The notes under the pieces are model-generated. The model was not told the DNA's origin and did not search any database. It saw only the letters and a program-made list of their open reading frames with translations. Shown here in pieces: positions 17,084 to 64,000 of a DNA stretch of 64,000 nucleotides (the stretch's first letter is position 1; each line of letters opens with the position of its first letter). Position numbers and translations under genes: made by a program. Source of the DNA: Macrostomum lignano (Eukaryota); assembly GCA_002269645.1 (NCBI GenBank), contig NIVC01000985.1, forward strand, positions 134,587 through 198,586. The letters run 5' to 3'.

Positions 17084-19144
17084 TCACTCCAGCATCTGCC
17101 GCTCCTTTCCCGGCTGGTCCATCAGCTCGATCGCCTCCTCCTGATTGGCCGGATGCTCGTGGATTTCCGGCCTCTGGACTGTACACTGCGGAGCTTCGTC
17201 GACGACAATTTCGTCGCCGTCGTTAGTCCGCCGGTCGCCAGCGACTCCGCCGTTTGCGTCGCCACCGCCACCAGCGCTGCTTCCTCCTCCTCCACCTCCT
17301 CCGCCGCCACCGCCACCGCCGCCCTTGCGATCAGCGCGACCACCTTGCCTCTCCGGACGGATTCTGAGCAGGCGAAACGCCTCCGCCTTGAAGGCTGGCC
17401 CAGCCAGGCAGTACAGCAAGAAATGGATTGCGTAATTAAGATTGAACATGCTGTAGCAGCATACCTGGCCCAGGTAAATCAGGTTCAGNNNNNNNNNNNN
17501 NNNNNNNNNNNNNNNNNNNNNNNNNNNNNNNNNNNNNNNNNNNNNNNNNNNNNNNNNNNNNNNNNNNNNNNNNNNNNNNNNNNNNNNNNNNNNNNNNNNN
17601 NNNNNNNNNNNNNNNNNNNNNNNNNNNNNNNNNNNNNNNNNNNNNNNNNNNNNNNNNNNNNNNNNNNNNNNNNNNNNNNNNNNNNNNNNNNNNNNNNNNN
17701 NNNNNNNNNNNNNNNNNNNNNNNNNNNNNNNNNNNNNNNNNNNNNNNNNNNNNNNNNNNNNNNNNNNNNNNNNNNNNNNNNNNNNNNNNNNNNNNNNNNN
17801 NNNNNNNNNNNNNNNNNNNNNNNNNNNNNNNNNNNNNNNNNNNNNNNNNNNNNNNNNNNNNNNNNNNNNNNNNNNNNNNNNNNNNNNNNNNNNNNNNNNN
17901 NNNNNNNNNNNNNNNNNNNNNNNNNNNNNNNNNNNNNNNNNNNNNNNNNNNNNNNNNNNNNNNNNNNNNNNNNNNNNNNNNNNNNNNNNNNNNNNNNNNN
18001 NNNNNNNNNNNNNNNNNNNNNNNNNNNNNNNNNNNNNNNNNNNNNNNNNNNNNNNNNNNNNNNNNNNNNNNNNNNNNNNNNNNNNNNNNNNNNNNNNNNN
18101 NNNNNNNNNNNNNNNNNNNNNNNNNNNNNNNNNNNNNNNNNNNNNNNNNNNNNNNNNNNNNNNNNNNNNNNNNNNNNNNNNNNNNNNNNNNNNNNNNNNN
18201 NNNNNNNNNNNNNNNNNNNNNNNNNNNNNNNNNNNCTCCGCTTGAAGGCTGGCCCAGCCAGGCAGTACAGCAAGAAATGGATTGCGTAATTAAGATTGAA
18301 CATGCTGTAGCAGCATACCTGGCCCAGGTAAATCAGGTTCAGAACGATTTTCTTTTGCCTCATAAATAGTGTCACGCTTCTCATTCAGCACCACGGTGAG
18401 GATGAGGTAGGGTACGAGGAAACCAGGTAGAAGATGCTGGTGCACAGAAGCATTTTCGTGAGGTTGCTGCCGTCCTTCTCTCTTGTTCGGCGCTTTGTGC
18501 AAATTTTTCTCGCGCTTAGCTTTCACCGATGCAGCGTGCGAATAATGAGCAGGTTGGCAATGAGCATGACTAGAAACGGTCCGACTGTTATTAGCGAAGG
18601 ATCGACGTACTTCACGTACGCTTTCCTAATAAACTCGTCCTCAGACGAGCAGATTGTTTTGTTGTTGTCGTTTACCATTAGGGTCATGTACCATGGATGT
18701 CGGCAGTTGATAAGAGACACTAAACAGGCTATCAGTATGCACACTAGCTTGGAACGTTTAATCGTGCAAAACTGTCTGGCCTTAAAGGGGCACACGACCC
18801 AAACCATCCGATCGATGGTCACGGCCACGAGTACCCAGGCGCTGATCTGCGTCACAGAGTAGTTCAGAAACAGCTGCAGCTTGCAGAGCACTATGTGCGT
18901 GTCTCGAAACTGCGTGCTACTGGTGAAGACAGCAGCCGCCAGGGCCTTTGTTGTCGGGCCGACCAGCAGTACCAGGATGTCAACGGCGGCCAGAACGGTG
19001 AAGTAGAAAGCCGTGCTAGTGTTTCGCAGGTTCGGCGCGCGCAGCACCCTGATGGTGAGGATATTGCCGCCAATTCCAAACAGAGCGATTAGACCGGCCA
19101 GGCTCATCTCCAGGGCGACCAGACCTTCGTAGATTTTTGCTATT
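17084..19144 (-). CDS. Orphan class A peptide-type GPCR (FMRFamide-receptor-like); main coding exon, interrupted by a false gap and small indels; upstream exon not found
   Basis: TM1 GIGGNILT, TM2 LAAVD, TM3 TIDRMVWVVCPFKARQFCT, TM5 GPFLVMLIANLLII, TM6 LTKMLLCTSIFYLV(F)LVPY, TM7 NYAIHFLLYCLAGPAFK. The poly-Gly C-tail is ORF 17084-17449. Acceptor TTTTAG at 19150-19145. In-frame TGA at 18523-18525 and frameshifts near 18420 and 18360. Confidence 0.85.
17489..18235. other. Scaffold gap (747 N) whose flanks overlap by about 107 bp
   Basis: 17381-17488 is repeated at 18236-18342, differing only by one base missing from a CC/GG pair. Confidence 0.97.
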
Positions 19145-23139: not shown

Positions 23140-23364
23140 GGTAGGTAGGTAGGTGGGTAGGTAGGTAGGTAGGTAGGTAGAGAGGTAGGTAGGTAGGTAG
23201 GTAGGTAGGTAGGTAGGTAGGTAGAGAGGTAGGTAGGTAGGTAGGTAGGTAGGTAGGTAGGTAGGTAGGTAGGTAGGTAGGTAGGTTGGTTGGTTGGTTG
23301 GTAGGTAAGTAGGTAGGTAGGTAGGTAGGTAGGTAGGTAGGTAGGTAGGTAGGTAAGTAAGTAG
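23140..23364. repeat. (TAGG)n microsatellite
   Basis: Direct reading. Confidence 0.97.
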
Positions 23365-24288: not shown

Positions 24289-24820
24289 ACCTACCTACCT
24301 ACCTACCTGCCTACCTACCTACCTACCTACCTACCTACCTACCTACCTACCTACCTACCTACCTACCTACCTACCTACCTACCTACCTACCTACCTACCT
24401 GCCTACCTACCTACCTACCTACCTACCTACCTACCTACCTACCTACCTACCTACCTACCTACCTACCTACCTACCTACCTACCTACCTCTCTACCTACCT
24501 ACCTACCTACCTACCTACCTGCCTACCTACCTACCTACTTGCCTACCTACCTACCTCTCTACCTACCTACCTACCTACCTACCTGCCTACCTACCTACCT
24601 ACCTACCTACCTACCTACCTACCTACCTACCTACCTCTCTACCTACCTACCTACCTACCTACCTACCTGCCTACCTACCTACCTACTTGCCTACCTACCT
24701 ACCTCTCTACCTACCTACCTACCTACCTACCTGCCTACCTACCTACCTACCTACCTACCTATCTATCTACCTACCTACCTACCTACCTACCTACCTACCT
24801 ATCTACCTACCTATCTACCT
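24289..24820. repeat. (CCTA)n microsatellite
   Basis: Direct reading. The YLPT ORFs (24223, 24539, 24687) are artefacts of it. Confidence 0.97.
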
Positions 24821-25239
24821 TAGCTACCAACCAATCGACCTCACTCACCTACTACTAGCTCGTATCAAACCTCTCCAGAAAAGTGCAGCCACCCGTAGAG
24901 CCGCAAGAAAGAATGGTTGAGTAAAATGGAATCAAAGCTTTACTAGGAGCAGGGAGTGAAGGCTGATAAAAAGCACTCACTTGAATAGAAGAGGAACTAA
25001 AACTTGAAAGTCAATACTAAATACATGGGACACTTCATAATGTTGCTTTCTGGGAATGTCAGCGGCAGCGCCCACTTTTCAATCGATTGGCAAACTATTC
25101 GGCTCTCTGGCTCTTAGCCGCAGTCTGTTGGATCATTCTGCTCAAATTATACAATTCCTGAAGCACCCCCACCCTCGGCAGGCTACTGCTCGTCTTGGGT
25201 TTCTTAAGTTTGAACTCAAATCAATCGGGTCCGCAAGAT

Positions 25240-25824
25240 AAGAAGACAAACACGAACTGTCAATAAGAAACCTGAGTCGGCGCTCGATTCTGCCTGTGAA
25301 GTGTGAACTGTCTCTGCTGCAGGTTTGGACGATTTGCGCGAAAATTGATCAACCCGCTGCCCCTCTCGCAGGCTCAGAAACGTCTTTCTGAACCAAAATC
25401 GGAAGGAACCAAAATCCTCGTCATGACCTTTGCCGGCCATGGCTACCTCGCCTGGCACTGCTTCCTCCAAGGCGACTTTGAGAGTGAACTTTGCCCTTTT
25501 TGCGAGTACGACAATGAAGATGCTCAGCACTTTGTTTGTCACTGTCCTTTCTTCACCAGAGACCGGCTGTGTTACCTCGGGCCGAACCCGTCCATTTACG
25601 AGGTCTGCCAGCCCGAAAGCATCCCACGGCTCATCCAGCTCCTCCGGGCGACAAGACGAGCCACTTTCTTCTCAACGGAAGATCACGCTGCAGGACGGAC
25701 CGGCGGACCACCCTGACCAGCCCCACGCCTCTGCCTGTCTGCAGGCTTTCAGGGGCTAGCGGAGTGGGCGACCCTCGCCTCCCCGCTGTATCTACGGACC
25801 ACCCTGCAGCTAAGTCAAAAGTAA
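25240..25824 (+). mobile_element. 5'-truncated 3' end of an I-group/LOA-like LINE (diverged relative of the element at 59920-64000)
   Basis: AGHGYLAWHCFLQG..ELCPFC..DNEDAQHFVCHCPFFTRDRL..LGPNP...VCQPESIP aligns with SGHGCFSRHRFLQG..ERCPFC..GSENAENFICHCPVFTRARL..LEPNP...VCRPESIP. The 3' UTR motif and CTAAGTCAA end are shared. Confidence 0.9.
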
Positions 25825-26974
25825 CACCCGCTGCATTTTAGAGACGTTCATCAGTGAGTTCCTATTTAACAAGCCTGCATGGCAGCATAGTGTCGCAAGC
25901 CTGTCAATGTCAAATGCCTCGTTATCTAGTTAGACGCTGGCCTATTGAAAAAAAACAATAAAAACATTTAACCAACCACTTTTGAACTCACTCCGTTGAG
26001 TTGTCGGCCATGCTTTCCAGTGCAAAAAATTATTAGAAATGCAGCTTCAGAGAGGCAGAGGCCTGTTTGTGAACTTTCGGTTCAATATGTTAAGGAAATC
26101 CGAGTGGCAAAGGCTGGCCAGGGTCTCGTCCCGCCCTGCTTTGTATTGCCCATCCGACTGGTCAAAACTTCTCCCATTGGGCGAGCCGGGCAGCCAGTCA
26201 GATCGAAAGAGGAAAGATCGACAAATTTATCTGCTTTGTCGTTAGTTGCAGGAGATTTCTACGGACTTAGCTTTAGGTACAGATGTGACGTTGCGGATAT
26301 CTTAGACTTAAGCAGCATGCTATGCCTTTTCAAAGGACTTTTGACGGAGGTAATTAAAAAACTTTGGCAACCTCCTTAACCACTGTACATAATTCTCCCA
26401 ACCGCAATGTTCATAGCAGCTATTCCATTGTCTGAATATCCTTGAAGAGTCTGGCTGAAATGCATAATTTAGATCTCTTAGATGACGCTCTCCTTCCGAA
26501 ATGGTAAGCTTGAGAGAAACTTAATTCGAATAAGCAATCGATCAAGTCGCTTTAATCGATTGATATGGCGTCGAATTTCTTTGAATATTTCCACGGATAA
26601 ACTTTAAGTTTTGAGCTGTTCCTAAATTAAAGTTACCGAAGAATTTATGGGTCGGAGAATATACTCGTAGCTCGAATTGGAAGTCGTCTTTTTCGAGAGC
26701 TTTCAATTCATCATCCATGTCGTGGACTTCTAGCAGTGGCTAATTTAAAAAATCCACGTTGCACGCGCGAGTTATTAGTATCAATGTATAAATTTAAGTA
26801 CCACCGAGAAACTAAATTCATCCAATGCTTATACTTTTTAAAAAGTTCTGATTTATTGCTGTGATATCTTGAAGGAATGCACAAGTGCGATTTTGAATCC
26901 AGAATTAGTAACTTATTATCTTAAGCAAAAAATCTCATCAATCAATGAGGTGATAAGGCATACAAAATGGCGTT

Positions 26975-28121
26975 TGTGTCTATGTTTTTGGAGTCAGACA
27001 GTGAGGGCAGCTTGTGTCTATGGTGCTTGAGTCAGACAGTGAGGGCAGATTGTGTCTATGGTGCTTGAGTCAGACAGTGAGGGCAGATTGTGTCTATGGT
27101 GCTTGAGTCAGACAGTGAGGGCAGATTGTGTCTATGGTGCTTGAGTCAGACAGTGAGGGAAGATTGTGTCTATGGTGCTTGAGTCAGACAGTGAGGGCAG
27201 ATTGTGTCTATGGTGCTTGAGTCAGACAGTGATGGCAGATTGTGTCTATGGTGCTTGAATCAGACAGTGAGTGCAGATTGTGTCTATGGTGCTTGAGTCA
27301 GACAGTGATGGCAGATTGTGTCTATGGTGCTTGAGTCAGACAGTGAGGGCAGATTGTGTCTATGGTGCTTGAGTCAGACAGTGATGGCAGATTGTGTCTA
27401 TGGTGCTTGAGTCAGACAGTGAGGGCAGATTGTGTCTATGGTGCTTGAGTCAGACAGTGATGGCAGATTGTGTCTATGATGCTTGAGTCAGACAGTGATG
27501 GCAGATTGTGTCTATGGTGCTTGAGTCAGACAGTGATGGCAGATTGTGTCTATGGTGCTTGAGTCAGACAGTGAGGGCAGATTGTGTCTATGATGCTTGA
27601 GTCAGACAGTGATGGCAGATTGTGTCTATGGTGCTTGAGTCAGACAGTGAGGGCAGATTGTGTCTATGGTGCTTGAGTCAGACAGTGAGGGCAGATTGTG
27701 TCTATGATGCTTGAGTCAGACAGTGATGGCAGATTGTGTCTATGGTGCTTGAGTCAGACAGTGAGGGCAGATTGTGTCTATGATGCTTGAGTCAGACAGT
27801 GATGGCAGATTGTGTCTATGATGCTTGAGTCAGACAGTGAGGGCAGATTGTGTCTATGATGCTTGAGTCAGACAGTGAGGGCAGATTGTGTCTATGGTGC
27901 TTGAGTCAGACAGTGAGGGCAGATTGTGTCTATGATGCTTGAGTCAGACAGTGATGGCAGATTGTGTCTATGGTGCTTGAGTCAGACAGTGATGGCAGAT
28001 TGTGTCTATGGTGCTTGAGTCAGACAGTGAGGGCAGATTGTGTCTATGATGCTTGAGTCAGACAGTGATGGCAGATTGTGTCTATGGTGCTTGAGTCAGA
28101 CAGTGATGGCAGATTGTGTCT
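26975..28121. repeat. Minisatellite, 38-bp unit TGTGTCTATG(G/A)TGCTTGAGTCAGACAGTGA(G/T)GGCAGAT, about 30 copies
   Basis: Direct reading. Confidence 0.97.
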
Positions 28122-28573
28122 AATGTCTAAGAAAAAATGAATCATTGTCTATGATGAGACCATATGCACAATCACATTGTCTTATGGCTACATTTTAGTC
28201 GCTTAAATATTGATTTCAAAGCGGGGACTGTTAGCGTATCAATGACCACCGCTCAATAGTAGGCCATAAACATTTAAACAGATTATTAGTCACACGACAA
28301 TAGCCTTTATTCAGTGCAAGTGCACTGAGTCCACGATTACTGCGTTTATTATTGAGAAGCTTTGCGATTTCACCTGCCTGTCTTGAGCCTAAAAACCGTT
28401 GAATGTCACAACTAAGCTCAGCTAAATTTTTGTACTTTATTTAGCTTAATTAATGGTCATGGTCAAAATGGCAAAACAGCTTCTAAAAATGATTTTAGAC
28501 TCAAGCCTCAAGACTTGAGACTCAAGGTAACTGCGCATAATTTCTCATTTCTGCCACGTTTTAGAGTGACAGC

Positions 28574-29423
28574 TGTTTTACAGATGCGTTGCAGATGTGT
28601 TGCAGATGTGTTGCAGATGTGTTGCAGATGTGTTGCAGATGTGTTGCAGATGTGTTGCAGATGTGTTGCAGATGTGTTGCAGATGTGTTGCAGATGTGTT
28701 GCAGATGTGTTGCAGATGTGTTGCAGATGTGTTGCAGATGTGTTGCAGATGTGTTGCAGATGTGTTGCAGATGTGTTGCAGATGTGTTGCAGATGTGTTG
28801 CAGATGTGTTGCAGATGTGTTGCAGATGTGTTGCAGATGTGTTGCAGATGTGTTGCAGATGTGTTGCAGATGTGTTGCAGATGTGTTGCAGATGTGTTGC
28901 AGATGTGTTGCAGATGTGTTGCAGATGTGTTGCAGATGTGTTGCAGATGTGTTGCAGATGTGTTGCAGATGTGTTGCAGATGTGTTGCAGATGTGTTGCA
29001 GATGTGTTGCAGATGTGTTGCAGATGTGTTACAGATGTGTTGTAGATGTGTTGCAGATGTGTTGCAGATGTGTTGCAGATGTGTTGCAGATGTGTTGCAG
29101 ATGTGTTGCAGATGTGTTACAGATGTGTTGTAGATGTGTTGCAGATGTGTTGCAGATGTTTTGCAGATGTGTTGCAGATGTGTTGCAGATGTGTTGCAGA
29201 TGTGTTGCAGCTGTGTTGCAGATGTGTTGCAGATGTGTTGCAGATGTGTTGCAGATGTGTTACAGATGTGTTGTAGATGTGTTGCAGATGTGTTGCAGAT
29301 GTGTTGCAGATGTGTTGCAGTTGTGTTGCAGATGTGTTGCAGCTGTGTTGCAGATGTGTTGCAGATGTGTTGCAGCTGTGTTGCAGATGTGTTGCAGATG
29401 TGTTGCAGATGTGTTGCAACTGC
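28574..29423. repeat. Minisatellite, 11-bp unit TGTTGCAGATG, about 77 copies
   Basis: Direct reading. The MCCRCVADVLQ and ATHLQHICNTS ORFs are artefacts. Confidence 0.97.
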
Positions 29424-34755: not shown

Positions 34756-37700
34756 CTCCTCATTTTTCCAAGGCACACCCAATCAACTCTAATCCCAGAA
34801 AAAGTGTTTCAAGTGCTTTTGCTAGAATTCCTTAGAAGGAAGAGAGCATCGGAGCTTAACGCTAATCCGATAATTTTCAGGAACGGGAATAGAGCTCAAT
34901 TAGTAGTGTTCTCGCTATCATTTTTGCGACAAAGCCCAGAAAAGTACAGAGCAGCTCTATTTTCAAGCCCACCTATTCCAAAGCCCTTGCACTTTTTATC
35001 GACAATCGCCTCGAGCTGGTTGAAAAATAGCTAGCTAATAGAACAACAAATCAGGATAAATCTGGGCGAAAAGTCAGGTTGAGCAGACAACTATGAGTCG
35101 TCCCAAACATCGCTCTCTCTTGATTCACAAAAATCCATTTATTATTATTCCATTTAGATAGGAAAGTGAGATTGTTCGGCAGCATCCGCTAGCAGGAGCT
35201 GTGCTGCTTACCTTCATTAGATGGCCGAAATTTCAGTCCAGAAAAGATTGAATCGCTGCAAACTTACAGTCGCCATATTGAACTATAATTATTTCCTAGG
35301 CTAGGCTGGAGAATTTAAGTTAGGCTCACTATTAGGCATCCTTAAGGAAAATCTTAGTTGATGGCAAGAACTTTTAAACAAAAGTTTCGTAAACATAAAA
35401 AACTCTTAATGGTAAATCAATGCAGACGTCAATTTTAGGACTAAAGAGATCCTGCCGTGTCCTTCATTGTTATTTTACTGGTTTTCTAAGAGTTATTTAT
35501 TTACGGACTTTCATAACACTTGCAGTACTCAATGTTTGTGGAATATTTATAACTTTTATATTAATTTTTAGGCCGATGTCAAATTCAGGGCTGCTGTAGC
35601 ACACCCGTGTGTCCGTGTGCTCAATAGCGCTAAACATATCATTAACAGTAAAAATTTCTAATGCGAATTTGTTAATAAGTTAATCAAAAATGTCTCAACT
35701 CAAGTCTGTTAACGTTACTAAAAAAATCTTTAACGCTTTTTAACGGTCTGTTGCCCAGCACTTGCTAGACTCAGCCGCATCGAGGAAATCTTCCATAAGT
35801 GCGGAAAAGTTACCTGAAATTACGTCTTAGTCAACCGCTAACTTGTATTCTTGTATCGAAGTGGGGCGCAATGACACTTGAAAAAAACCGGGTGGGAGAA
35901 GAACCTTGATTTGCTAGAGTCGACCAGGCAGTCCTGAAATCCCAAGAAGCTGTTCACCCCGCCTGGCCACCCGCGGTAAGTGTCTACAGCCGCTCCGGCC
36001 ATCGATCTGATGAGTGCAAATCGAGCACAAAACCGTTTGCCCGAAAGAAGAATTTTCAGCTTGCTCTTGTCCTCGTCTTTTTGCGCTTGAATGCTTTGAC
36101 TTGACCTGACTTGGCTACATAGTTCGAAGTTCGTTGACTGGATAGCGAGTCGAGCTGACAGCCTCATAAAAACTTTTTACGCCTTTTTGAAGCACTTTCT
36201 GCAAGTAGGAAGAAATATATTAGCATTTGAATCGGGTGCTCCACCCGGTTTCTTCAGCAAGAAACTCCAGAATCGACTGCCTCCAAGCGTTCAGCTAAAA
36301 GGACAGTCAAGTCAGTATAGCCGGAAGATTTTAAAGAAGAGATTACGCTAACGAAGACCCCATAGCCTCAAAGGGTGATGCGAATGATAACTAGAATAAT
36401 TTTCCTCTGCTCAGTCAGTTGCTCGGTTAATTTAAGTACCGGAAGCGTTCTCTGAGAACCCTTTGAACAAACTTCCTCTAACACAAGGGCGGAAGTTTTC
36501 AAGGAAGGAGAGGCCGCTTGAGAAGAGAGTACGGTGCGAAAAAGTCAGCGGGAAACTGGCCTTCCCCCAATGGAAAATTAATGCAAGAGCATAGGAGAGG
36601 AACTCGCCGGCTCTCAACGAATAGGATTAGTGTGCCGCTGGGTCTAGTGGGGAATCACAGCCCTGCAAAGTGGCCGGGAGGCAGGGCGGGGTTTAACAAA
36701 CGCAATTTTTTATCGCACACGAACAACTTATAGGGCAGACCAGCAGGAGTACTAGACTGGGAGGGAGAGCTGCGGAGCAACTACTTTGCTTCTATATAGG
36801 ACTCAAGCACTGTCTGCTCCCAGTGCCAGTATGCCCCCCTGATCCTCGGCTCCGACGCCAACCACCCCGTGGAATCTCGAACCCAAAGCAAGTCGGGGCA
36901 TAGAATGAAAAGGCGCGGGGGTCGGCGAATCAAGCGGGCTTCCTGCGTCCGTTTTTTTCCCCCTGAAGCGAAGCGAGCGAGGGGGCGCTTGAGAAGATGG
37001 TGAGAAATGGGAGTCTGCAGCTTCCTTCCTATCTTCAACTATGCCGCCCTCTCCAGCCTGCGTCAAGCTTTTCTCCCTATCTATCCGGGGTGGAGCCAGT
37101 TAATTGGATGAGGACACACGCCTCGCTCACTCTCTTCTCTGGCTCCTCTGCTTGCCTCCTCCTCCGCCCATCTCCCCCCTTTTTTCCGCCCGGTCTCTTG
37201 TCTCTCTCTCTCATCCTTCTATTAGCGGCACTGAATGCTTCGTCGAGGCTCTTCAGCAGCCGTCGAGAGCGGCCGGCAGGGCGCCTCCACCTCCGGTCGG
37301 ACATTTATAAGGCCGCCCACTCTTTTTCCTCCTCCTTGTGCTCCAAGCACACTTGGCGGTAGATGAGGTCTGAAGTACGTGGCGCTGCTTCTGCAAAATG
37401 CGGAAGCCAAAATCACGGCTCCCGAGGTAGTTTCGAGTCTTTAATTTTTAATCTTCATTTACTTAAAATGAAGACACCAGCTTTGCTACTCACCTGTGTC
37501 TCAGAAAGCTTTTCTCAATAATTTATGCTTGACAAGAAAAATGTGCATCCAAAATTCATACCGCGTATCCAATTCTATCTATAGAGTCAGCACAAGTATC
37601 TTTGTAATAAAATTGGTGCATGCAGGTACTCTTAGATTGGCTTTAAGCTAGGCCTAAGCTTAAAAAATGATATTGACAAGCATTGTCTACATTTAATTAT

Positions 37701-38071
37701 TTAAAAAGGTCTAGGAATAGCTACTAATATGCATTTAAATGAAACTATTGCTGACAATAGCGGCTTAGGAGTGCCTGTATGCAGGTTTTTTAAAGCAAAT
37801 ATACTTTATTCAAGAAGAAGCAGAACAGATATTTCACTTTTGAGCATTTAAAAAATTTCGGCTGGGCTTATGAAATGAAAAGAAAACCATATGAAAATGA
37901 AACTTTCTACATTAAATACAACAGAGTAACATGTTGTATGTGCTAAATTAAGAGAATGGTAATTTTCACTGCCCCAGATCAAATGCAATCATTGATTTTG
38001 GGATGAAACAAAAATTTTTCTTGTCTCCGCCACAAAAAATATACGATTTTTTTTGTTTTACATTCTTTTAT

Positions 38072-38447
38072 GCTACTGCGGTCAAGGGGGGCCAGCGGTC
38101 TAGCGCAGCTGCTCTGGTGTGCCAGCGACCCAGGCTCGATTCCAAGTGCAGCCACATTAATTTGGGGCTGAATTGGAATCTCGGTTTGGCTCTGCTCGTG
38201 CAATTAACGGCCTTGATGGCCAACCCCCCAAGGCGCAGTGAAGTGTACATGCCTAACGATAATATAAAGTTAGGGCCGCTGTACACTCCTGTGTGAGTGT
38301 GTGCCTGCGTACGTATCCGCGCGCTTGTATGCCTGCTCAGGGGAGTCGGCGGAATGGGCAGTAATGCCTCTCGCCGGTTGTGTGCCTATGTCGCTTAAAG
38401 TGCGCCAGGGTGCACACAACCCCCCTGCCTCTGAAAAAAAAGTCAAA
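38072..38447 (+). mobile_element. tRNA-headed SINE with LINE-like structured 3' tail and A8 run
   Basis: A-box-like GGCCAGCGGTCTAGCG (about 38090), B-box-like GGCTCGATTCC (38133-38143). Body is homologous to the copy at 42865-43510. Tail CAGGGG...CCCCTG resembles the LINE 3' UTR. A8 at 38434-38441. Confidence 0.75.
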
Positions 38448-39149
38448 GAGACTCAGTTACACCTGAGCTTCTCAAACAATCAGGGGAGCTCTCTGATTTG
38501 CCATGGTCATACTCAGTTTAACACGGTTTGATACCCAGCTTTCACGGGCAGCTAAAGAAGTACACCTGTTAAAGGTGACAAGCATAGACAAAAACTACGG
38601 GACCTTTTACTCCTCCTCTGGGGTCTTAAAGCTCAACTTTAAGTTTCAAGATTTACTAGCATACGTCTCCTATCCCTGCACAGTTGACTTTTTAACTATC
38701 TGCGACCTATAGTCCCTGGTAAGACAGCTTGTATTTGCTTTAGAGCTGGCTAATCATGCTCAAAGTTCTCTCGCTTTTGGCAAATTCCAAGTTAAAATGG
38801 TATAATAAAATCCATAGCTGAGCTTGGATGTCCGGCTGTAGCCCATAGATTGCGCGATTATGTTGCTTTCAGCACTTCCGGATTGCTGGTCCAGAAACTG
38901 TGGGCGCGACTTTGGAACCTTTCTAAGCCTATGAGGTTTTAAAGTAAGACTTTTGCGCTGCCGAGATAGTAGCATGATTGAAATCATTCTTAAATTAGGA
39001 GATTTTCTACAACTCTGGCCTATCTGCTGGGTCTGGAAAGCATTCAGAATTTACAGCTGTTTCTCTGAGATGAAATAAGATCAATTGATGTTTAATCAAA
39101 GAAAATATCAGTTTTGAAAATTTCTTTCCAAAACCTACAATGAAAGTGA

Positions 39150-41410: not shown

Positions 41411-42864
41411 AGCAGCTAAGCCAGAGTTTTCTGCATCTGGATTACCCTACATTGGAGTTCCTAGAAAGAAAGATACTTTTTTTAAGCCCAGCAACTGCCC
41501 AGCTTGGCCTCCCATCAGGCAGGTCGGTGCTTGACAAAATCGGAGTCCATAAAACTTACCTTAGTTTGAGTTTGATAACACCTAGGCGCTGTCTGGGCTC
41601 ATAAATCATTCTGATCCTACAGACAGCGCGAATCTTGCATATACAGCTTTTCCTTATCAATACCCTGTGCCAGTAGTGACTAAGCCCTTTCATTTCGATC
41701 CCGATACTAAGCTATTGTTTTATCACTCTGCTCTGCTTGACCTGAACTGACTCAAGCTGAGCTTCGTGACTCGCCTTTCATCATTTTACCTGCTGGATGC
41801 GCTACGAGAACAAAAATGGAAAAAAGGTATAAAAAACGCTTTGCTGCCGCAGACGATTCAAAAGCAGGGACGGGTGGTTACAAAAAATTATGCTTCTGAA
41901 ATTTTAAATTCAGAGTTGACAGTGGGAAAAGGGACTCAGTTCAATCAAGCCATTCAAAGTTATATCAGTCAGAAACTATCCATCTACTTCTTTGCGCTAA
42001 TGCAGAAAATGCTATTCAAGGGGGTACCAGTTGAATTGGACAACAATCGAGTCACAAGCGCGGCGCTGTGCCGCCCGTGCCAGCCTGGCCCGTGCAAGCG
42101 ACCTGTTGCCAGCAGCTAAAAAGCTGATAGAGTTTGGTGGGCTGTCCAAAAAGGGGACGGTACCTACTTGGCCACTCCACCTGTCCGGGCAGTAGGCCAA
42201 AATAAGCTTCACGTCTGGCGTGACACCAGAAGTTCTCGCCTTAGGAATTATATTGGGTTACAAGATGTTCCGCAGTACTACAGCCGACAGACGAGCCGAG
42301 TGACCCAAGTTCGACCGAGGCTACTGAATGGGTCGCCAGCGCCGGAGCCCAGAATGACTTGAATTTCCGCGGAAACGTGTAGCCGGGGTCGGCTTGCGAG
42401 ACAGCTTGGGAGAAGTCTGCGACTCCCAGAGGTGAAAAGAGAGTGCAGAACACCCGCAGAGTGCAAACCAGAGGGGGGCAGGCGTGAAGTACTGCATCCT
42501 GTTTAGCTACTCCAGCTGGAAGGCCACATCACCCGCGCCGAGTCGGACAGCCCTCAGCGGGTGCAGGCGTTTTCGTCGACTGTCAACATGTACGTTCGCG
42601 CCCAAACTGTCAATTCAATTAGTTAATTTATTCTTTGAAGAATAAGCTCACTCCAGACTCAGGAAAGCCCAGCCAAATGACACTACCTTCCGTGTATTGA
42701 TTATAGATTTTTCAATGGACTATTCTCTACTGAGAATCGTCTCTGTGTATTTCACTTGTTGCCCATCTATACAGCAAGATAGTTGATAAAACTGTGTATC
42801 AACCTCAAATGCCTTGTTGGAAGTCAGTACTGAGTCTTCTCAATCTTGTCATTATTAACGTTAG

Positions 42865-43510
42865 GCACGCACACGCTCACACTGGGTGTACAGCGTCCTT
42901 GACTTTCTAATCGTCAGGCATGTACACTCTCTCAGGCATGTACACTCTCTCAGGCATGTACACTCTCTCAGGCATGTACACTCTCTCAGGCATGTACACT
43001 CTCTCAGGCATGTACACTCTCTCAGGCATGTACACTCTCTCAGGCATGTACACTCTCTCAGGCATGTACACTCTCTCAGGCATGTACACTCTCTCAGGCA
43101 TTTACACTCTCTCAGGCATGTACACTCTCTCAGGCATGTACACTCTCTCAGGCATGTACACTCTCTCAGGCATGTACACTCTCTCAGGCATGTACACTCT
43201 CTCAGGCATGTACACTCTCTCAGGCATGTACACTCTCTCAGGCATGTACACTCTCTCAGGCATGTACACTCTCTCAGGCATGTACACTCTCTCAGGCATG
43301 TACACTCTCTCAGGCATGTACACTCTCTCAGGCATGTACACTCTCTCTGTGCCTTGGGGGTTGGCTCTCATGGGTGGGAATCGCAGAACAAACCTTGGAT
43401 TAATTTTAGTGCAAAAATGACTGCGATCGAGGACGGAATCGAACCAGGGACCTGTGGGGCGAGTGTCAGATGCGTTTATCGCTGAGCTGCCCTGCTTCCT
43501 GCAGTGTAGG
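42865..43510 (-). mobile_element. Second tRNA-headed SINE copy, lacking the LINE-like tail, with an internal 18-bp array
   Basis: Minus strand: AGCTCAGCGATAAACG (A-box-like), GGTTCGATTCC (B-box, 43445-43435), GCCAACCCCCAAGGCACAG. After the array, CATGCCTGACGAT..AAGTCAAGGACGCTGTACAC..GTGTGAG matches 38248-38305. Confidence 0.8.
42915..43346. repeat. Minisatellite, 18-bp unit CAGGCATGTACACTCTCT, 24 copies
   Basis: Direct reading; nearly homogeneous. Confidence 0.97.
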
Positions 43511-45849: not shown

Positions 45850-46654
45850 CTAGTTTGAGCAGAGCGAGGGTGTGCGGTTTGGGATTTAACAGTGGGGAGC
45901 TTTATTAAAAAATCCCTTAGATAAATACAGCTGGATTGGCAACATCAGTGCTAACCGCATCCAAGAGCACCGCCTTGCAGTATATAGCGAGACTACTGTT
46001 GCTATGCGTTCCATCAGTGATCTGAGTGAACTAAGAATCATATTTTCTCCATATTTGATAGGTATTGCTTTTCTATTCGTCTTCTTCTCACATAATAATC
46101 CATTTACATTGCTGTGCTCAAAGCAATAGCTGCAGCAATCGTTTTGCTAAACAAAAGCAGGCTTGGCACCGGTTGAACGGGTAGAAAGGCACGCAAGCTA
46201 AAAGCAAAAGATTTTCCAGCTGAATAACGAGCAGAAATTCTCCCAGGGCCGAGGTGATAATTTGAAATCCATACCTGGTGGGGGGGGGTTAGTGAAATTC
46301 TGTTGGCGGGTGGGTGGGTGGCCGCACCGGACCAGATCTTGGCCAATTCATTTTCATAAATCGTCAGTCAGCTCTGACAGAGAATGCCGCGTTCCTGAAT
46401 GCCCATCATGCACCAGGGGGCGGAAGCGCCCGGGAATGTCTGCGGCTAATTGACTTCCCTAATTAAGCCTGGCTCGCGGTTAGCAGGTGAGACCGGAAAC
46501 CGATGGATTGTCTTTTTAAAATCGATTGATTCAATTTTCTTATGCTTTGCTTCTGCGATGTTCTGTCGTAAAAAGTTCGAATAAGGTTGGTGCCTCGATT
46601 TTTAGAGAACGATCTGGTTTATAACCGTATTTTGGTGCAGCCAGTGGCTACTCT

Positions 46655-48105
46655 ACATTGGCCATATTGGCTATTGACATTGGCTATATTGGCTATTGAC
46701 ATTGGCTATATTGGCTATTGACATTGGCTATATTGGCTATTGACATTGGCTATATTGGCTATTGACATTGGCTACATTGGCTATTGACATTGGCTATATT
46801 GGCTACTCTACATTGGCTATATTGGCTACTCTACATTGGCTATATTGGCTACTCTACATTGGCTATATTGGCTACTCTAAATTGGCTACATTGGCTACTC
46901 TACATTGGCTACATTGGCTGTTGACATTGGCTATATTGGCTATTGACATTGGCTATATTGGCTATTGACATTGGCTACATTGGCTATTGACATTGGCTAT
47001 ATTGGCTACTCTACATTGGCTATATTGGCTACTCTACATTGGCTATATTGGCTACTCTACATTGGCTATATTGGCTACTCTACATTGGCTACACTGGCTA
47101 CTCTACATTGGATACACTGGCTACTCTACATTGGCTACATTGGCTACTCTACATTGGCTACACTGGCTACTCTACATTGGCTACACTGGCTACTCTACAT
47201 TGGATACACTGGCTACTCTACATTGGATACACTGGCTACTCTACATTGGCTACTCTACATTGGCTACATTGGCTGTTGACATTGGCTATATTGGCTATTG
47301 ACATTGGCTATATTGGCTATTGACATTGGCTACATTGGCTATTGACATTGGCTATATTGGCTACTCTACATTGGCTATATTGGCTACTCTACATTGGCTA
47401 TATTGGCTACTCTACATTGGCTATATTGGCTACTCTACATTGGCTACACTGGCTACTCTACATTGGATACACTGGCTACTCTACATTGGATACACTGGCT
47501 ACTCTACATTGGCTACATTGGCTACTCTACATTGGCTACACTGGCTACTCTACATTGGCTACACTGGCTACTCTACATTGGCTACACTGGCTACTCTACA
47601 TTGGATACACTGGCTACTCTACATTGGATACACTGGCTACTCTACATTGGCTACATTGGCTACTCTACATTGGCTACATTGGCTGTTGACATTGGCTATA
47701 TTGGCTATTGACATTGGCTATATTGGCTATTGACATTGGCTACATTGGCTATTGACATTGGCTATATTGGCTACTCTACATTGGCTATATTGGCTACTCT
47801 ACATTGGCTATATTGGCTACTCTACATTGGCTACACTGGCTACTCTACATTGGATACACTGGCTACTCTACATTGGATACACTGGCTACTCTACATTGGC
47901 TACATTGGCTACTCTACATTGGCTACACTGGCTACTCTACATTGGCTACACTGGCTACTCTACATTGGCGGCTTCACTGGCTACTCTACATTGGCTACAT
48001 TGGCTACTCTACATTGGATACATTGGCTACTCTAAATTTGCGGCTACACTGGCTACTCTACATTGGCTACACTGGCTACTCTACATTGGCTATATTGGCT
48101 ATAAT
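46655..48105. repeat. Compound array of 9-, 13- and 14-bp units around ATTGGCT with higher-order blocks
   Basis: Units TGGCTA(T/C)AT, TGGCTATTGACAT and TGGCTACTCTACAT; blocks restart at 46762, 46965, 47320 and 47730. Confidence 0.93.
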
Positions 48106-49446
48106 ATATTCATTTTAGTTTAGATTTTCGCGTCTATTCTTTTCAAAATTTTACCTTATAATCCTGTCCAATACACCATTGGAAATTCAAGGAATGACTA
48201 ATCCGTTTTTATAGATTTTTCTATCTCAAAATTTCCCAATTAGCAACATGACACTCAAGCAGGTGGAATGTGGATATAACTTTGAACTTTATAGTTTAAT
48301 CAGCTAATTTAGTTGAACCTGAAGGTTAGTCGATAGTCGGTTAAATTCATTAAAAAATAAAATTTATATTTACACGTTACTACTAATTTGGTTGCTGTAG
48401 TAGTATGCATGGAATATCAATCAACGGCCAGGCAATGCTTGGTAAACCAATGTTTATTTAGAAGATTGGCATATAAAGCCAGATCAGACCCCACCTACTC
48501 AATCATTTCCAGCCTGACTGCCTTAATTTCACCGCCGAAATTTCACCGCCGACAATTTCACAGACAATTTTACTTATTTTGACTGTAATTTTCATTCATA
48601 TTCATTGGAATTTTTATGCATTAAAGACCTTTGGCTGATTCATTACATTTTTCCCTTGCCCCTGAACCAAAGCAGGAAAAAAGATGCGATGCTCAGAAAG
48701 GGTACAAAATTATACTTTTACCGCACCATTTACGGCACTTCAAAATTAAAACTTTACAGTCTATTTGTACTTTGTACAATCTGTACTATTTGTAAAGTCT
48801 ACAGTATAATTCTAAGGGATGGAATCTAAGGGATTTCTACCAGAAAATCTTCTGGTAGAACAGAAGATCTTGCTCAAAAAACTCTTAGAGTATAGTATAG
48901 TAGTCAGTATGCGTTTTTAATGTCACTTCCTCAAAAAGTCTCGAAAAACATAATAACAGCTAGCGTATTCACAGTTTGAAAGAATAATCACTCTCGCCGC
49001 AGAAAAATAGGGCGATCAGATTGTTGGTCCCAAATATCCCGGTCAAATTGTGCCGGTCAAATTTTCCGGTCTCATCTGGTTGTGGGACGATGTCGCCGAA
49101 GGCTTTGCGCCAGGGTGCCCGCAGCCCTCGTGCCAATGTTTATTTATGCAAGCTTATGAAATATTATTAAGGGACTGGAAAGGTGGTGGTTGAGTAAAGC
49201 TTGAAATCCAAGACATTTGACTGCCCCAACTGCCACTATTCGATCACTAAAAAATTGACTGCTACAAAGCTGAACCTAACTCTAAACGTACTCGTAACAT
49301 AAATCCCCAATTATTATAGCGACAAATATTAGTGATTGAATTCCTCATTTCCGAGGAAGTGGCACCATTGGACATTCACCGTCGCTTTCTGATACTGCCG
49401 AAGACAGCATTGAGTAAGAAATTACTGACACTGGTTCAACTCTCAC

Positions 49447-50170: not shown

Positions 50171-51089
50171 CAGTATAGATTGAGCTGCATCATGGCATTC
50201 CAGAAAATTTCGATGTGCAACTCGTACTCACAAGTAGGATGCTCTAAGAATCCAGATCCGAGAAGAACAAAATTGGCTTTTCAAGTTCAGCGAGGCTGTT
50301 TTACTTGCAAAGCGATTCTTTCCGAGTAAAATTATTAGTAACTTACCGAGTTATTAGTAAATTGAAGTAAAAGCTTATCTCACACTGGCTTGAGTCACTC
50401 CCTGAGTCCCCTGGACTACATTTCAGCCCGCAGCCAGTCCTGACTTACAACCGAGACAGAGACGGGTGAAGCATTATTGATTGTTTTGCGCTTTGTGCAT
50501 GAGTCTTGCTGGGCAGACCAGCTACCCACCCCCCCCCCCTCTAATACAGTTCGGTCAATACACCGAGCGTATACTGTGTCTATGCCCGCCACCATTCAGA
50601 AAATTGATCGCATAGTGCTCACAAGCTTCTCACTGAATAAAAAGATTAGAAAGGATTTGCGTCCATCAGATAATTGCCTTTTGAAGAATGAGGTTCAGAC
50701 AGAAAACTACAAAGTCAGATAGATGAGATAGTTATTAGTTATTATGCTAATGGAATTTTTCTAGGCTAGCTATTGTATTGCTACGGAGCAGATGTATTTT
50801 CTTGTGCAGCCAAGCGCACTCTAGGCTTCCTCTTCGATTTGTGCTATTTTTTTGAGTGACACTCCTGTCATGGAGCCCGGCAGGGGACAGAAGCTATTTA
50901 TTAGGTTACTAATTAAATCTCTGTAATCAATCAGTAAAGTGCGAGCTGCAAAGTTAACCAACAAACCAAATAGTTGGTGGGGCAATCAAAAACAGTCAAA
51001 AGGATTTGACAACTTTCCTGCCTAGATGATGCCACAGAAACAATAGATGAACCCTGAATGCAATTAGTCTCACGAACTGACTGGCTATT

Positions 51090-53600
51090 TGTCAGCTTGA
51101 TTGGCTATTTATCAACTTTATTGCTCTTTATCAGCTTGATTGGCTATTTATCAGCTTGATTGGCGTTTCATCAGCTTGATTGGCTATTTATCAGCTTGAT
51201 TGACTATTTATCAGCTTGATTGGCTTTTTATCAGCTTGATTGGCTCTTTGTCAGCTTGATTGGCTATTTATCAGCTTGATTGGCTATTTATCAGCTTGAT
51301 TGGCTATTTATCAGCTTGATTGACTATTTATCAGCTTGATTGGCTATTTATCAGCTTGATTGGCTCTTTATCAGCTTGATTGGCTCTTTATCAGCTTGAT
51401 TGACTATTTATCAGCTTGATTGGCTATTTATCAGCTTGATTGGCTCTTTATCAGCTTGATTGGCTCTTTATCAGCTTGGTTGGCTATTTATCAGCTTGAT
51501 TGACTATTTATCAGCTTGATTGGCTATTTATCAGCTTGATTGGCTATTTATCAGCTTGATTGGCTATTTATCAGCTTGATTGGCTCTTTATCAGCTTGAT
51601 TGGCTATTTATCAACTTGATTGGCTATTTATCAGCTTGATTGGCTCTTTATCAGCTTGATTGGCTCTTTATCAGATTGATTGGCTTTTTATCAGCTTGAT
51701 TGACTATTTATCAGCTTGATTGACTATTTATCAGCTTGATTGGCTCTTTATCAGCTTGATTGGCTCTTTATCAGCTTGATTGGCTATTTATCAGCTTGAT
51801 TGACTATTTATCAGCTTGATTGACTATTTATCAGCTTGATTGGCTCTTTATCAGCTTGATTGGCTCTTTATCAGCTTGATTGGCTCTTTATCAGCTTGAT
51901 TGACTATTTACCAGCTTGATTGGCTCTTTATCAGCTTGATTGACTATTTATCAGCTTGATTGGCTATTTATCAGCTTGATTGACTATTTACCAGCTTGAT
52001 TGACTATTTACCAGCTTGATTGACTATTTATCAGCTTGATTGGCTCTTTATCAGCTTGATTGACTATTTATCAACTTTATTGGCTTTTTATCAGCTTGAT
52101 TGGCTTTTTATCAGCTTGATTGGCTTTTTATCAGATTTATTGGCTTTTTATCAGCTTGATCGGCATTTCATCAGCTTGATTGGCTCTTTATCAGATTGAT
52201 TGACTATTTATCAGCTTGATTGGCATTTCATCAGCTTGATTGGCTTTTATCAGCTTAATTGGGTCTTTATCAGCTTGATTGACTTTTTATCAGCTTGACT
52301 GGCATTTCATCAGCTTGATTGACTATTTATCAGCTTGATTGGCTTTTTATCAGCTTGATTGACTTTTTATCAGCTTGATTGGCTTTTTATCAGATTTATT
52401 GGCTTTTTATCAGCTTGATCGGCATTTCATCAGCTTGATTGGCTCTTTATCAGATTGATTGACTATTTATCAGATTGATTGGCTTTTTATCAGATTTATT
52501 GGCTTTTTATCAGCTTGATTGGCATTTCATCAGCTTGATTGGCTTTTATCAGCTTAATTGGGTCTTTATCAGCTTGATTGACTATTTATCAGCTTGATCG
52601 GCATTTCATCAGCTTGATTGGCTCTTTATCAGCTTGATTGACTCTTTATCAGATTGATTGACTATTTATCAGCTTGATTGACTATTTATCAGCTTGATTA
52701 ACTATTTATCAGCTTGATTGGCTCTTTATCAGCTTGATTGGCTCTTTATCAGCTTGATTGACTATTTATCAGCTTGATTGGCATTTCATCAGCTTGATTG
52801 ACTCTTTATCAGCTTGATTGACTATTTATCAGCTTGATTGACTATTTACCAGCTTGATTGACTATTTACCAGCTTGATTGACTATTTATCAGCTTGATTG
52901 GCTCTTTATCAGCTTGATTGGCTCTTTATCAGCTTGATTGACTATTTATCAGCTTGATTGGCATTTCATCAGCTTGATTGACTCTTTATCAGCTTGATTG
53001 ACTCTTTATCAGCTTGATTGGCTCTTTATCATCTTGATTGGCTTTTTATCAGATTTATTGGCTTTTTATCAGCTTGATCGGCATTTCATCAGCTTGATTG
53101 GCTATTTACCAGCTTGATTGACTCTTTATCAACTTGATTGGCTTTTTATCAGATTTATTGGCTTTTTATCAGCTTGATCGGCATTTCATCAGCTTGATTG
53201 GCTCTTTATCAGCTTGATTGGCTCTTTATCAGCTTGATTGACTATTTATCAGCTTGATTGGCTCTTTATCAGCTTGATTGACTATTTATCAGCTTGATTG
53301 GCTCTTTATCATCTTGATTGGCTTTTTATCAGATTTATTGGCTTTTTATCAGCTTGATCGGCATTTCATCAGCTTGATTGGCTCTTTATCAGCTTGATTG
53401 GCTCTTTATCAGCTTGATTGACTATTTATCAGCTTGATTGGCTCTTTATCAGCTTGATTGACTATTTATCAGCTTGATTGGCTCTTTATCAGCTTGATTG
53501 GCTCTTTATCAGCTTGATTGACTATTTATCAGCTTGATTGACTATTTATCAACTTGATTGGCATTTCATCAGCTGGATTGGCTATTTGTCGGCTTGATCG
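51090..53600. repeat. Satellite, 20-bp unit TCAGCTTGATTG(G/A)CT(A/C/T)TTTA, about 125 copies
   Basis: Direct reading; lies between the divergent ABHD14 and DEG/ENaC start codons. Confidence 0.97.
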
Positions 53601-54165
53601 GGTTTTTTGGCTTATTTGATAGCTTATTGATCGGCTATTATGAACTGAAGCTCTGCAATCAGCCTACAGTTATCTGAGATTTTAGGATTTGGGGAGGAGC
53701 ATCCATTCCAGGTTCTGGTTCTGGGCCTCCTTGGTTGATTGTAGTGGACCAGACCATTAGTGCGCAGCTGCATTAAACTAATTTACTAGCCAGAAACCAA
53801 CACAATAGGGTTTTTCATTGCTCACATTTGCCGAGGAGAAGGGAGGGAGACTGAACTCTGCACTTAATGGGACAGCAGCTGCAGGGGGCAAATCAGAACT
53901 GACAGCGGATGCGACTCACCCCGGTGGCTTTCATCCAGCTTCCCATTGGACTGGGACAGCATTTGGGAAAAGACGTCTTCGCTCAAAATGGGATTTCTAA
54001 TAAAATATGCGTGCAGACAGACGCTAGCGAAATCGGTGCATGGAACTTTCTGGAATGCCTGTTTAGTTCTCTCCATAAGCTGTGGCCTAAGCTTAACGAG
54101 TGTTAACTGAGAAATTCTTCATCCCTTAGCCATTAGCTCGAAGTGGCGCTTTCTGAAAACCAACC

Positions 54166-59643: not shown

Positions 59644-60036
59644 GCTTCTTTCCAAGGGTTTTTCAAACTAAGTCCACAATTATTTAGAAACGCAAAGCTA
59701 CGATAACTACGAGTACAATAGCTTCTGTGAGTTAGCTAACAAGGCTATTTTGCAATGGAAAGTATTTGAGCGGCGTCCCGTTGATGCAATTATTTTTTTA
59801 TTGCGTAATAACAATAATGGTAATAAATGATTACACCTGCCCTAATGGCCAGATGTGCAACTGACAGCTCAGCCGCAGCTATTGCGCGGCGCATCTGAAG
59901 GCTGCGTACAGATGTACGGACTTGACTTACTTGACTTAGCTGCAGGGGGCGTCCGGCGGATGCAGCGGGGAGGCGGAGGAGACCGCCCATTCCGCTAGCC
60001 CCTGGCGACCAATGACTTCCGTTGAAGTGAAGTCGC

Positions 60037-63739: not shown

Positions 63740-64000
63740 TGCAGATCGGATGTTGCAGCCGCCAGGAGTTCCTCCTCCTCCTCGGCGCTCACCGGCTTCG
63801 GGTCGGGGTCGCCGGTGTCCATGGGCTCTTCTTCAGCAAAAGGCCCCCGATTGGCTGGAAGGCAGTAGGCAGCGTTCGCCGCCCTTTGCCCACCATCCAT
63901 GGGTCCTCCGCCTCAGATTGGCCCAATGCCCTGGAGCAGCCAGCCGCCTGGGCAGGCGGGTCCGTCTCCAGTCGCCCTGCCCCGAGGGTTGGGCCTCAGC
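63736..64000 (-). CDS. LINE ORF1, acidic C-terminal end
   Basis: ...PFAEEEPMDTGDPDPKPVSAEEEEELLAAATSDLQ*. TGA at 63738-63736 overlaps the ORF2 ATGs. Confidence 0.65.

Follow-up and report, generated by a model that had tools for sequence, protein, structure and literature searches.

Kajikawa and Okada reportedly described stringent-type tail recognition in 2002 for the eel pair UnaSINE1/UnaL2. For LINEs of this stringent type, both the common 3' tails of SINEs and LINEs and the recognition of the tail stem-loop by the LINE protein are established (PMC3747384; PMC4176376), and it is typical of such LINEs that each lineage carries its own terminal repeat (PMC3747384). The SINE Gecko of Aedes aegypti is entered in the table of known pairs as the partner of MosquI, a LINE of the I clade (Tu et al. 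2004; PMC3747384 Table 1). In fungi, Mg-SINE is paired with MgL and SINE2-1_BG with Tad1-24_BG (PMC3747384 Table 1), and AfuSINE2-1a with I-1_AF (PMC5063351). Recognition of a structured 3' UTR stem-loop in SART1/R1-clade elements of the silkworm is cited in PMC3747384. Additionally, several SINE superfamilies are modular, including the CORE-, V- and Deu-SINEs and the SINEs of molluscs and bivalves, and join a common head or core to different LINE-derived tails (PMC4758252, PMC11481361).

Macrostomum lignano is a model for regeneration and the germline. Its genome is very rich in repeats, with poor annotation of elements of this sort, and a literature search found no paper on Macrostomum SINEs or LINEs. 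Here we analyze a 64,000-nucleotide stretch of this genome (the window; contig NIVC01000985.1, positions 134,587 to 198,586), which holds a first candidate SINE/LINE pair for the species. A sequence-only reading of the same DNA had proposed that a SINE tail shares a structured 3' RNA element with LOA-like LINEs, forming a candidate partner system, and had inferred that the element and an LOA-type SINE partner were new. This novelty claim was too strong, as SINE partners of RNase-H-bearing clades are on record (PMC3747384 Table 1; PMC5063351). Table 1 of PMC3747384 contains no LOA pair.

Retroposons of the window

GC content is 45% across the window, which is rich in minisatellite arrays. SINE copy 1 lies at 38087-38447 on the plus strand (361 bp) and consists of a head with pol III-like boxes, a body and a LINE-type tail. 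It is non-coding, with stop codons in every frame, and contains no run of four T residues; the nearest downstream TTTT is at 38605. The head has an A-box-like motif, TAGCGCAGCTG, at 38101-38111 (plus), which agrees with TRGCNNAGTGG at 9 of 11 positions, and a B-box-like motif, GGCTCGATTCC, at 38133-38143 (plus), which agrees with GGTTCGANNCC at 10 of 11. These boxes are 32 nt apart and form the window's only such pair, on both strands, at a spacing of 25-60 nt. ARAGORN found no tRNA in the head, Rfam gave no tRNA match over 38000-38520 at E values up to 10, and on inspection the acceptor and T stems are unpaired. The label 'tRNA-derived' is not supported for this copy, whose head has only the A-box-like and B-box-like motifs.

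The 3' end of copy 1 (38428-38448, plus) comprises the linker CCTCTG, a run of eight A residues (A8) and the terminal unit GTCAAAG, the last of which is common to the LINE ends. Just 5' of the copy the sequence reads GTCAAG (38081-38086, plus), possibly the 5' copy of a target-site duplication or a site of microhomology. GTCAAG and GTCAAAG (38442-38448) are the sole direct repeat at the ends of the element. GTCAAAG may double as a target-site duplication, although this is not decisive: the two putative copies are short and do not match exactly, and they are hard to separate from the terminal unit that belongs to the element. Because the direct repeat overlaps the terminal unit, the 3' boundary is ambiguous, with A8 ending at 38441 and the GTCAAA unit at 38447. 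Such an overlap fits the pattern expected from microhomology priming between the RNA end and its target.

The tail of copy 1 (38338-38446) reads CAGGGG AGT CGGCG GAATG GGCA GTAA TGCC TCT CGCCG GTTGTGTGC, 26 nt, GCACACAAC CCCCCTG CCTCTG A8 GTCAA. The RNAfold MFE structure of 38338-38447 is a three-way junction of -49.1 kcal/mol (z = -4.9), and none of 200 dinucleotide shuffles folded as well. This Y-shaped element occupies 38338-38427 on the plus strand. Its outer stem pairs CAGGGG (38338-38343) with CCCCUG (38422-38427) and encloses two stem-loops, SL1 and SL2. SL1 (38348-38375), GGCGG-AAU-GGGCA(GUAA)UGCCU-C-UCGCC, has an AAU internal loop and the apical helix GGGCA/UGCCU, and SL2 (38376-38421) is 46 nt long, with a perfect 10-bp arm, GGUUGUGUGC/GCACACAACC, and an extension.

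LINE A occupies 59920-64000 on the minus strand, its 5' end lying beyond the window. Its ORF2 encodes endonuclease, RT and RNase H (Pfam order Exo_endo_phos_2, RVT_1, RNase_H) but is split among three ORFs. It stops at codon 60037-60039, and the RT-RNase H part (60037-62076, minus) is 98% identical to Macrostomum lignano proteins in UniRef. This domain order is common to I, Tad1, Nimb, Ingi and Outcast and does not discriminate LOA. Pfam searches of ORF1 candidates gave nothing to narrow the LINE clade, and none of the homologues found bore a clade name. The 3' UTR has a Y element at 59938-60004 (minus), composed of an outer stem CAGGGG/CCCCUG, an SL1 of AGCGG-AAU-GGGCGG..CCGCCU-CC-CCGCU and a short SL2, and continues with CAGCU. 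A terminal tandem repeat of two AAGTCAAGT units is read from the sequence at 59920-59937 (minus).

LINE B (25361-25825, plus) is a 5'-truncated copy of 465 bp from a diverged subfamily and shares 67% of its nucleotides with LINE A in the final part of ORF2. Its tail (25750-25825, plus) is a second LINE tail in the window, uncited by the sequence-only reading, and comprises a Y element at 25750-25811 and a terminal AAGTCAAAAGTAAC. A perfect 9-bp target-site duplication, ACCCGCTGC, is read from the sequence at 25352-25360 and 25826-25834 (plus). Truncation at the 5' end together with this duplication is the signature of target-primed reverse transcription by the LINE family.

One MFE topology, an outer stem with an SL1 bearing an internal loop and an SL2, is found in the SINE tail, in LINEs A and B, and in two related LINEs from other samples (L001, or LINE C, and L008, or LINE F). 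The folding energy of the LINE tails is no better than that of shuffled sequences (z = -1.2 for LINE A and -0.6 for LINE B). The SINE, LINE A and LINE B all end in an AAGTCAA(A)G unit. The tail sequences quoted in the sequence-only reading, that of LINE A spanning 60004-59931 (minus), proved exact when checked in the window. The common outer stem, apical hairpin and AAGTCAA terminus that it had described are borne out by the folds and the sequence, but its 'GAAUG/UCY' internal loop needs correction: the loop is AAU opposite C or CC, and the SL1 apical helix is closed by a G.U pair made up of the G from 'GAAUG' and the U from 'UCY'. Likewise, the SINE had been credited with an additional perfect 9-bp arm, which is in fact a perfect 10-bp arm that lengthens an SL2 also present in the LINEs. 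The statement that stem bases differ while pairing is kept holds up. Relative to LINE A, the SINE shows two compensatory double changes in SL1, one at the base, where G-C stands in place of A-U, and one in the apical helix, where A-U stands in place of G-C; there is also one change from G-C to G-U.

Conservation of the Y element in LINE relatives

The LINE relatives are contigs from other samples that encode ORF2 homologues with 32-61% protein identity. In L001 (61%; a JGI metagenome) the tail is nearly the same and ends in AAGTCAAAGT AAGTCAGT AAGTCAA. The tails of L002 (40%), L006 (~42%), L008 (~34%) and L003 (32%) are very different in sequence and have the same layout from the stop codon to the microsatellite. 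In all five, the Y element is flanked directly by the ORF2 stop on one side and by the terminal microsatellite on the other. The layout of the four more distant tails begins with GGGG, two bases, a 5-bp stem and AAU (AAC in L003), and continues with a hairpin closed by G.U or A-U and, after one to three further bases, with the return strand, an SL2 that varies and CCCC. The basal stem of SL1 differs among the LINE lineages (AGCGG/CCGCU, GGUGC/GCACU, UGUGC/GCGCU, GGCGC/GCGUC and GCAC/GUGC). As a proposed recognition module, the element would be characterized by a GGGG/CCCC outer stem, an SL1 with a near-invariant AAU loop beside a G.U pair, and an SL2 of free length. The 3' ends of two further contigs, L017 and L018, were unrelated or unlocated.

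When LINEs A, B and C were the sole input to a model, it scored 25 bits (E about 0.002) on the tails of both L002 and L006. In a MAFFT alignment of seven LINEs, 92% of the cells of SL1 are paired and changes on both sides occur in 7 of 11 pairs; 0 of 500 shuffles matched the observed pairing or covariation score, and slid controls were 36-57% paired. Over five LINEs, in an alignment fitted to the model, the full Y is 93% paired, and RNAalifold independently predicts the outer stem and SL1. Rfam 15 gave no gathering-level match in the window; at E values up to 10, the SINE and the tail of LINE A yielded nothing but noise. The terminal repeats differ by lineage: LINEs A, B and C end in (AAGTCAAGT)n, L002 in (TGA/GTGA)n, L006 in (GAT)n and L008 in (AACTC)n. 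These data support the Y element as a conserved, covarying feature of a LINE lineage.

Affiliation of the SINE tail

Model R2, a covariance model of the SL1 domain made from the seven LINE tails and no SINE, was searched against both strands of the window (128 kb). It matched LINE A at 48.4 bits (88 bits with a full-Y model), LINE B at 45.0 bits and the SINE SL1 at 26.5 bits (E = 0.0012); the next match had 10.7 bits (E = 3.4), and the SINE SL1 is the sole non-LINE match ahead of noise in the window. The R2 score reflects mostly primary sequence, because a bacterial locus that had been pre-selected from a huge collection by a primary-sequence pattern reaches 28 bits. The window-wide E value holds because the window was not pre-selected.

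The composite pattern CAGGGG-N50-80-CCCTGC-N3-15-AAGTCAA, taken from the LINE consensus, occurs in the window only in LINE A and the SINE, with 0.00 occurrences expected from shuffles. Plain BLAST of the SINE tail was marginal, with a best E value of 0.009 against the external tail of L001. The full-Y models R1 and R3 gave the SINE 14.3 and 18.6 bits (E = 0.55 and 0.1, respectively); both mis-register its 46-nt SL2 and penalize its longer linker, and the SL1 model and the composite pattern were relied on instead. When the SINE is added to the SL1 alignment, pairing stays at 92%, and the positions at which the SINE differs form G-C, G-U and A-U pairs. Its terminal unit, AAGTCAA(A)G, matches those of LINE A, LINE B and L001, and other lineages of the clade end in different repeats; the unit is that of the LINE lineage resident in the SINE's own genome. 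We conclude that the likeness between the SINE tail and the LINE 3' UTR is real, through homology or mimicry of the LINE module.

Three other sites in the window were considered as additional tails and set aside as chance matches or relics. The site at 53877-53924 (minus) ends in CCCCCTGCAGCT but is without SL1 or the terminal unit, and those at 49722 (minus) and 36095 (minus) have AAGTCAAA but are without the Y element.

A second SINE copy

A diverged SINE copy without the Y tail, copy 2, was found by sensitive self-comparison and nhmmer at about 42850-43497 (minus). With copy 2 as the query, nhmmer recovered copy 1 (38127-38311) at E = 2.5e-14; the SINE head and body are not single-copy sequence. 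The B box of copy 2, GGTTCGATTCC, is perfect; the copy also contains a T5 run, and its body includes an 18-bp tandem array of 24 units (42914-43347) that has grown from a body motif. Its homology to copy 1 ends at ...ACGT (38313), where copy 2 reads ...GCCTAACGT and then TAATAATGACAAG... (TAATAATGACAAGATTGAG...), and the Y element is absent from its 3' end. Within the 64 kb, two SINE copies were found, one of which bears the tail.

The sequence-only reading had named a missing tail in other SINE copies as a point that would count against it, and the tail is missing from copy 2, the one other copy found in the window. The partner system that it proposed is partly supported: the common structured element and the terminal unit are the hallmark of a stringent-type SINE/LINE pair, but the tail is present in one SINE copy only. 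A tail-less copy 2 fits either tail exchange between SINE subfamilies, a process familiar from modular SINEs (PMC4758252, PMC11481361), or a secondary or one-off acquisition of the tail by copy 1, and any subfamily structure drawn from two copies is conjecture.

Just 3' of both copies there is a weak similarity (AGACTCAGT..., p about 0.011); should it be genuine, the repeated unit may reach beyond the tail. The 5' flanks show no significant similarity (p = 0.33). The BLAST alignment of the copies begins about 58 nt 5' of the presumed SINE start, and no homology between them was detected past about 38029 or 38470. Searches beyond the window returned chance matches. A scan with the tail pattern of a metagenome collection that does not include the source sample of L001 gave eight, all in GC-rich bacterial sequence, and patterns of the SINE body and LINE tail gave a single phage match, present four times, in genome and viral contig collections. 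Translated SINE frames, compared with a protein collection for SINE-derived exons, gave 0 matches.

Alternative explanations

A stringent-type SINE/LINE partnership through the Y-shaped 3' module and the AAGTCAAGT terminal repeat is, in our judgment, probable. The tail could instead be a nested insertion. A LINE from a subfamily not sampled here, with a long SL2, would have left a copy so severely 5'-truncated that it consists of the tail alone, inserted into or close to the 3' end of a tail-less SINE that was already in place; the head and body would then be adjacent to the tail but not part of one element with it. Copy 2, which is a head and body without the Y tail, would agree with this, as would the weak common sequence 3' of both copies, and the 465 bp of LINE B show that the family makes very short 5'-truncated copies. 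However, no target-site duplication brackets the tail itself: what precedes 38338 or 38314 has nothing in common with what follows 38447. This argues against the independent LINE fragment that the sequence-only reading had itself raised. Nor is there an interrupted A-rich SINE end 5' of the tail, and the tail is unlike all sampled LINE tails in its linker, SL2 and A8, so that a matching LINE must be postulated. We regard such an insertion as unlikely. Template switching is the accepted route by which SINEs gain LINE tails, and a switch of the RT from the LINE 3' end to a SINE-like pol III RNA could also have produced a single chimeric copy that founded no family. The one tail-bearing copy seen, beside a tail-less one, is what such an event would leave. 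Yet the divergence of the SINE tail from each of the LINE tails sampled has left all of its pairs intact, a better fit to selection as a functional tail than to a dead chimera, and copy 1 has kept both boxes and is free of internal T4 runs. We consider a one-off origin rather improbable.

Whether the copies are a SINE at all can be questioned on the grounds that no tRNA match was found, that their BLAST alignment starts about 58 nt upstream of the presumed start and that their 3' flanks are weakly similar; they could then be what is left of an ancient segmental duplication, or fragments of some larger repeat, with fortuitous pol III boxes. This is quite improbable, given that the 5' flank similarity is non-significant, homology is confined within about 38029 to 38470, the B box matches fully in copy 2 and at 10 of 11 positions in copy 1, no other A/B pair occurs in the window, and a LINE-type tail with its terminal unit is hard to explain without retroposition. 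A chance resemblance of a GC-rich hairpin region to LINE tails is the reading to which we give very little credence. The marginal BLAST E values, the E values of 0.1-0.55 from the full-Y covariance models and the 28 bits that a bacterial chance locus attains with R2 all lean that way, but a LINE-only model finds the SINE at a window-wide E of 0.0012 with a large gap to the next match, the composite pattern has an expectation of 0.00, and both the position relative to the element end and the terminal unit are identical.

Proposed mechanism and significance

The partnership is best explained by a module of two parts. One is the Y three-way junction, with its CAGGGG/CCCCUG outer stem, an SL1 that combines a conserved AAU loop with an apical hairpin closed by a G.U pair, and an SL2 that varies in length; in the other, a short linker leads to AAGTCAA(A)GT, the terminal repeat unit specific to the lineage. 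SINE copy 1 itself is best explained as a non-coding retroposon with pol III-type boxes in its 5' part, the last ~110 nt of which copy the LINE 3' UTR module. By analogy with described stringent-type systems, pol III would transcribe the SINE through to the downstream T-run, and the LINE ORF2 protein would recognize the Y element in trans, chiefly by SL1, and nick the target DNA. Reverse transcription would then be primed on the terminal AAGTCAA repeat, probably aided by microhomology at the target (GTCAAG at the 5' flank), and the SINE would be mobilized as a new copy. The tail-bearing form is presumably a family and not a single copy.

A wider reading, which we offer tentatively as a possibility, is that the Y junction is the RT recognition module of an undescribed RNase-H-bearing LINE lineage, found in Macrostomum and in the hosts of several metagenome contigs, whose sub-lineages pair the module with their own terminal microsatellite and from which SINEs gain and lose the module as a cassette (copy 1 with, copy 2 without). 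If this cassette reading is true, the two copies would provide a natural with/without pair for dissecting what a stringent LINE requires in trans, in a transgenic flatworm model.

SINEs that borrow LINE tails are textbook biology, and the understanding of retroposons is unchanged by this locus. What is new is a host and a LINE lineage for ordinary SINE-on-LINE parasitism, with the tail in one SINE copy. The most useful by-product is the compact, covarying element of the LINE 3' UTR, which could become an RNA family and could help to annotate LINE and SINE ends in flatworm assemblies. It also offers a concrete target for testing trans-recognition by RNase-H-bearing LINEs, a group in which few recognition elements are defined.

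Comparison with described systems

As in UnaSINE1/UnaL2 of the eel and ZfL2 of the zebrafish, which belong to the L2 clade, the SINE described here bears the 3' tail of a LINE (PMC4176376; PMC3747384). The UnaL2 and ZfL2 tail contains a conserved stem-loop that experiment has shown to be needed for recognition by the ORF2 protein, whereas recognition of the Y element is drawn from analogy. The terminal tandem repeats, thought to serve priming or slippage, are (TGTAA)n in UnaL2 and ZfL2 and (AAGTCAAGT)n here. The L2 clade is without RNase H, in contrast to the endonuclease, RT and RNase H order of LINE A. A single hairpin makes up the RNA element of the L2 pair, in contrast to the three-way junction with an AAU internal loop found here.

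In the fungal pairs, as here, the 3' terminus of the SINE resembles the 3' UTR of a Tad1- or I-type LINE of the same genome. Their hosts are fungi, their sequences are unrelated to those of the window, and a structural comparison of the kind made here is not known for their tails. SART1/R1 resembles LINE A as a LINE of the same broad superfamily with a structured 3' UTR, and SART1/R1 elements need this 3' UTR for retroposition. However, they have no known SINE partner, end in poly(A) and are specific for telomeres or rDNA, whereas LINE B sits at an ordinary site. With the modular SINE superfamilies the two SINE copies have in common a like head and body joined to a different 3' end, which tail exchange would give, although here this is seen in only two copies.

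To our knowledge, no Y-shaped structured element has been described for Gecko/MosquI. The pair differs from the present one in its host, an insect and not a flatworm, and in its unrelated sequences, and Gecko is a documented multi-copy family. In Gecko/MosquI, as in the window, a pol III-type SINE is combined with an RNase-H-bearing LINE of the I superfamily, the two have a common 3' end with short tandem repeats, and the SINE end, like that of copy 1, joins an A-run to the repeat unit.

Genomic context

Minisatellites together occupy a large part of the 64-kb window, in which at least 17 arrays reach a TRF score of 300 or more. The TRF arrays have periods of 4-84 bp and copy numbers of up to 126, and examples of minisatellite arrays lie at 1-1457, 26974-28122, 28570-29418, 46645-48101 and 51078-53598. 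Just upstream of LINE B, a 5'-truncated LINE copy, a (GGTA)n array at 23140-23364 makes an inverted pair with an (ACCT)n array at 24289-24832. The N gap at 17489-18235 is bordered on either side by a copy of one 108-bp sequence (17381-17488 = 18236-18342, 99%), and this arrangement, spanning 17381-18342, looks like an assembly artefact. Additionally, a 560-aa ORF at 3242-4924 (-) matches two domains in Pfam, a SAMD1-like winged helix and SAM, and is probably a host gene exon.

A second SINE copy and its flank

A diverged second copy of the SINE, comprising head and body, is found at 42850-43497 (-) and has no LINE-type tail. It retains a perfect B box and has a T5 run inside the element. It also carries an 18-bp tandem array of 24 copies at 42914-43347 (99% identity), which originated from the body motif AGTGTACATGCCTGAGAG. 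The sequence immediately 3' of copy 1 (38448-38480) resembles that immediately 3' of copy 2 (42838-42800, -), sharing AGACTCAGT.A.CTGA.CTTC.C.AACAA, with p about 0.011 against random windows. If this likeness is genuine, the tail may not be the end of the repeated unit, or the SINE insertion sites may be related.

Possible tail relics

A hairpin at 49076-49139 (+) is 75% similar to SL2, the variable arm of the SINE tail (nhmmer E = 0.0028). Its pairing is retained via compensatory changes (GGUUGUGGG.../...CCCGCAGCC), and the 9-mer CTCTCGCCG, which precedes SL2 in the SINE, also occurs at 48992-49000, about 75 nt upstream of the hairpin. The locus has neither SL1 nor the terminal unit; hairpin and 9-mer may be the relic of a related tail. 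At 36095-36115 (-), AAGTCAGGTCAAGTCAAAG comprises two copies of a unit resembling the terminal repeat of the LINEs and the SINE. The sequence upstream of it contains no Y element (the three-way junction of the tail), and AAGTCAGGTCAAGTCAAAG may represent a decayed element end or chance.

The Y element in LINE relatives

The Y-shaped 3' UTR element recurs in relatives of the LINE on four contigs from JGI/ENA metagenomes, L002 (5093-5211), L006 (4177-4289), L008 (1702-1810) and L003 (3525-3583), the last of which ends before the LINE 3' end is reached. Terminal microsatellites differ among these relatives, being (TGA)n(GTGA)n, (GAT)n or (AACTC)n. The Y element is present in metagenomic relatives of the LINE, and its distribution is therefore wider than Macrostomum.
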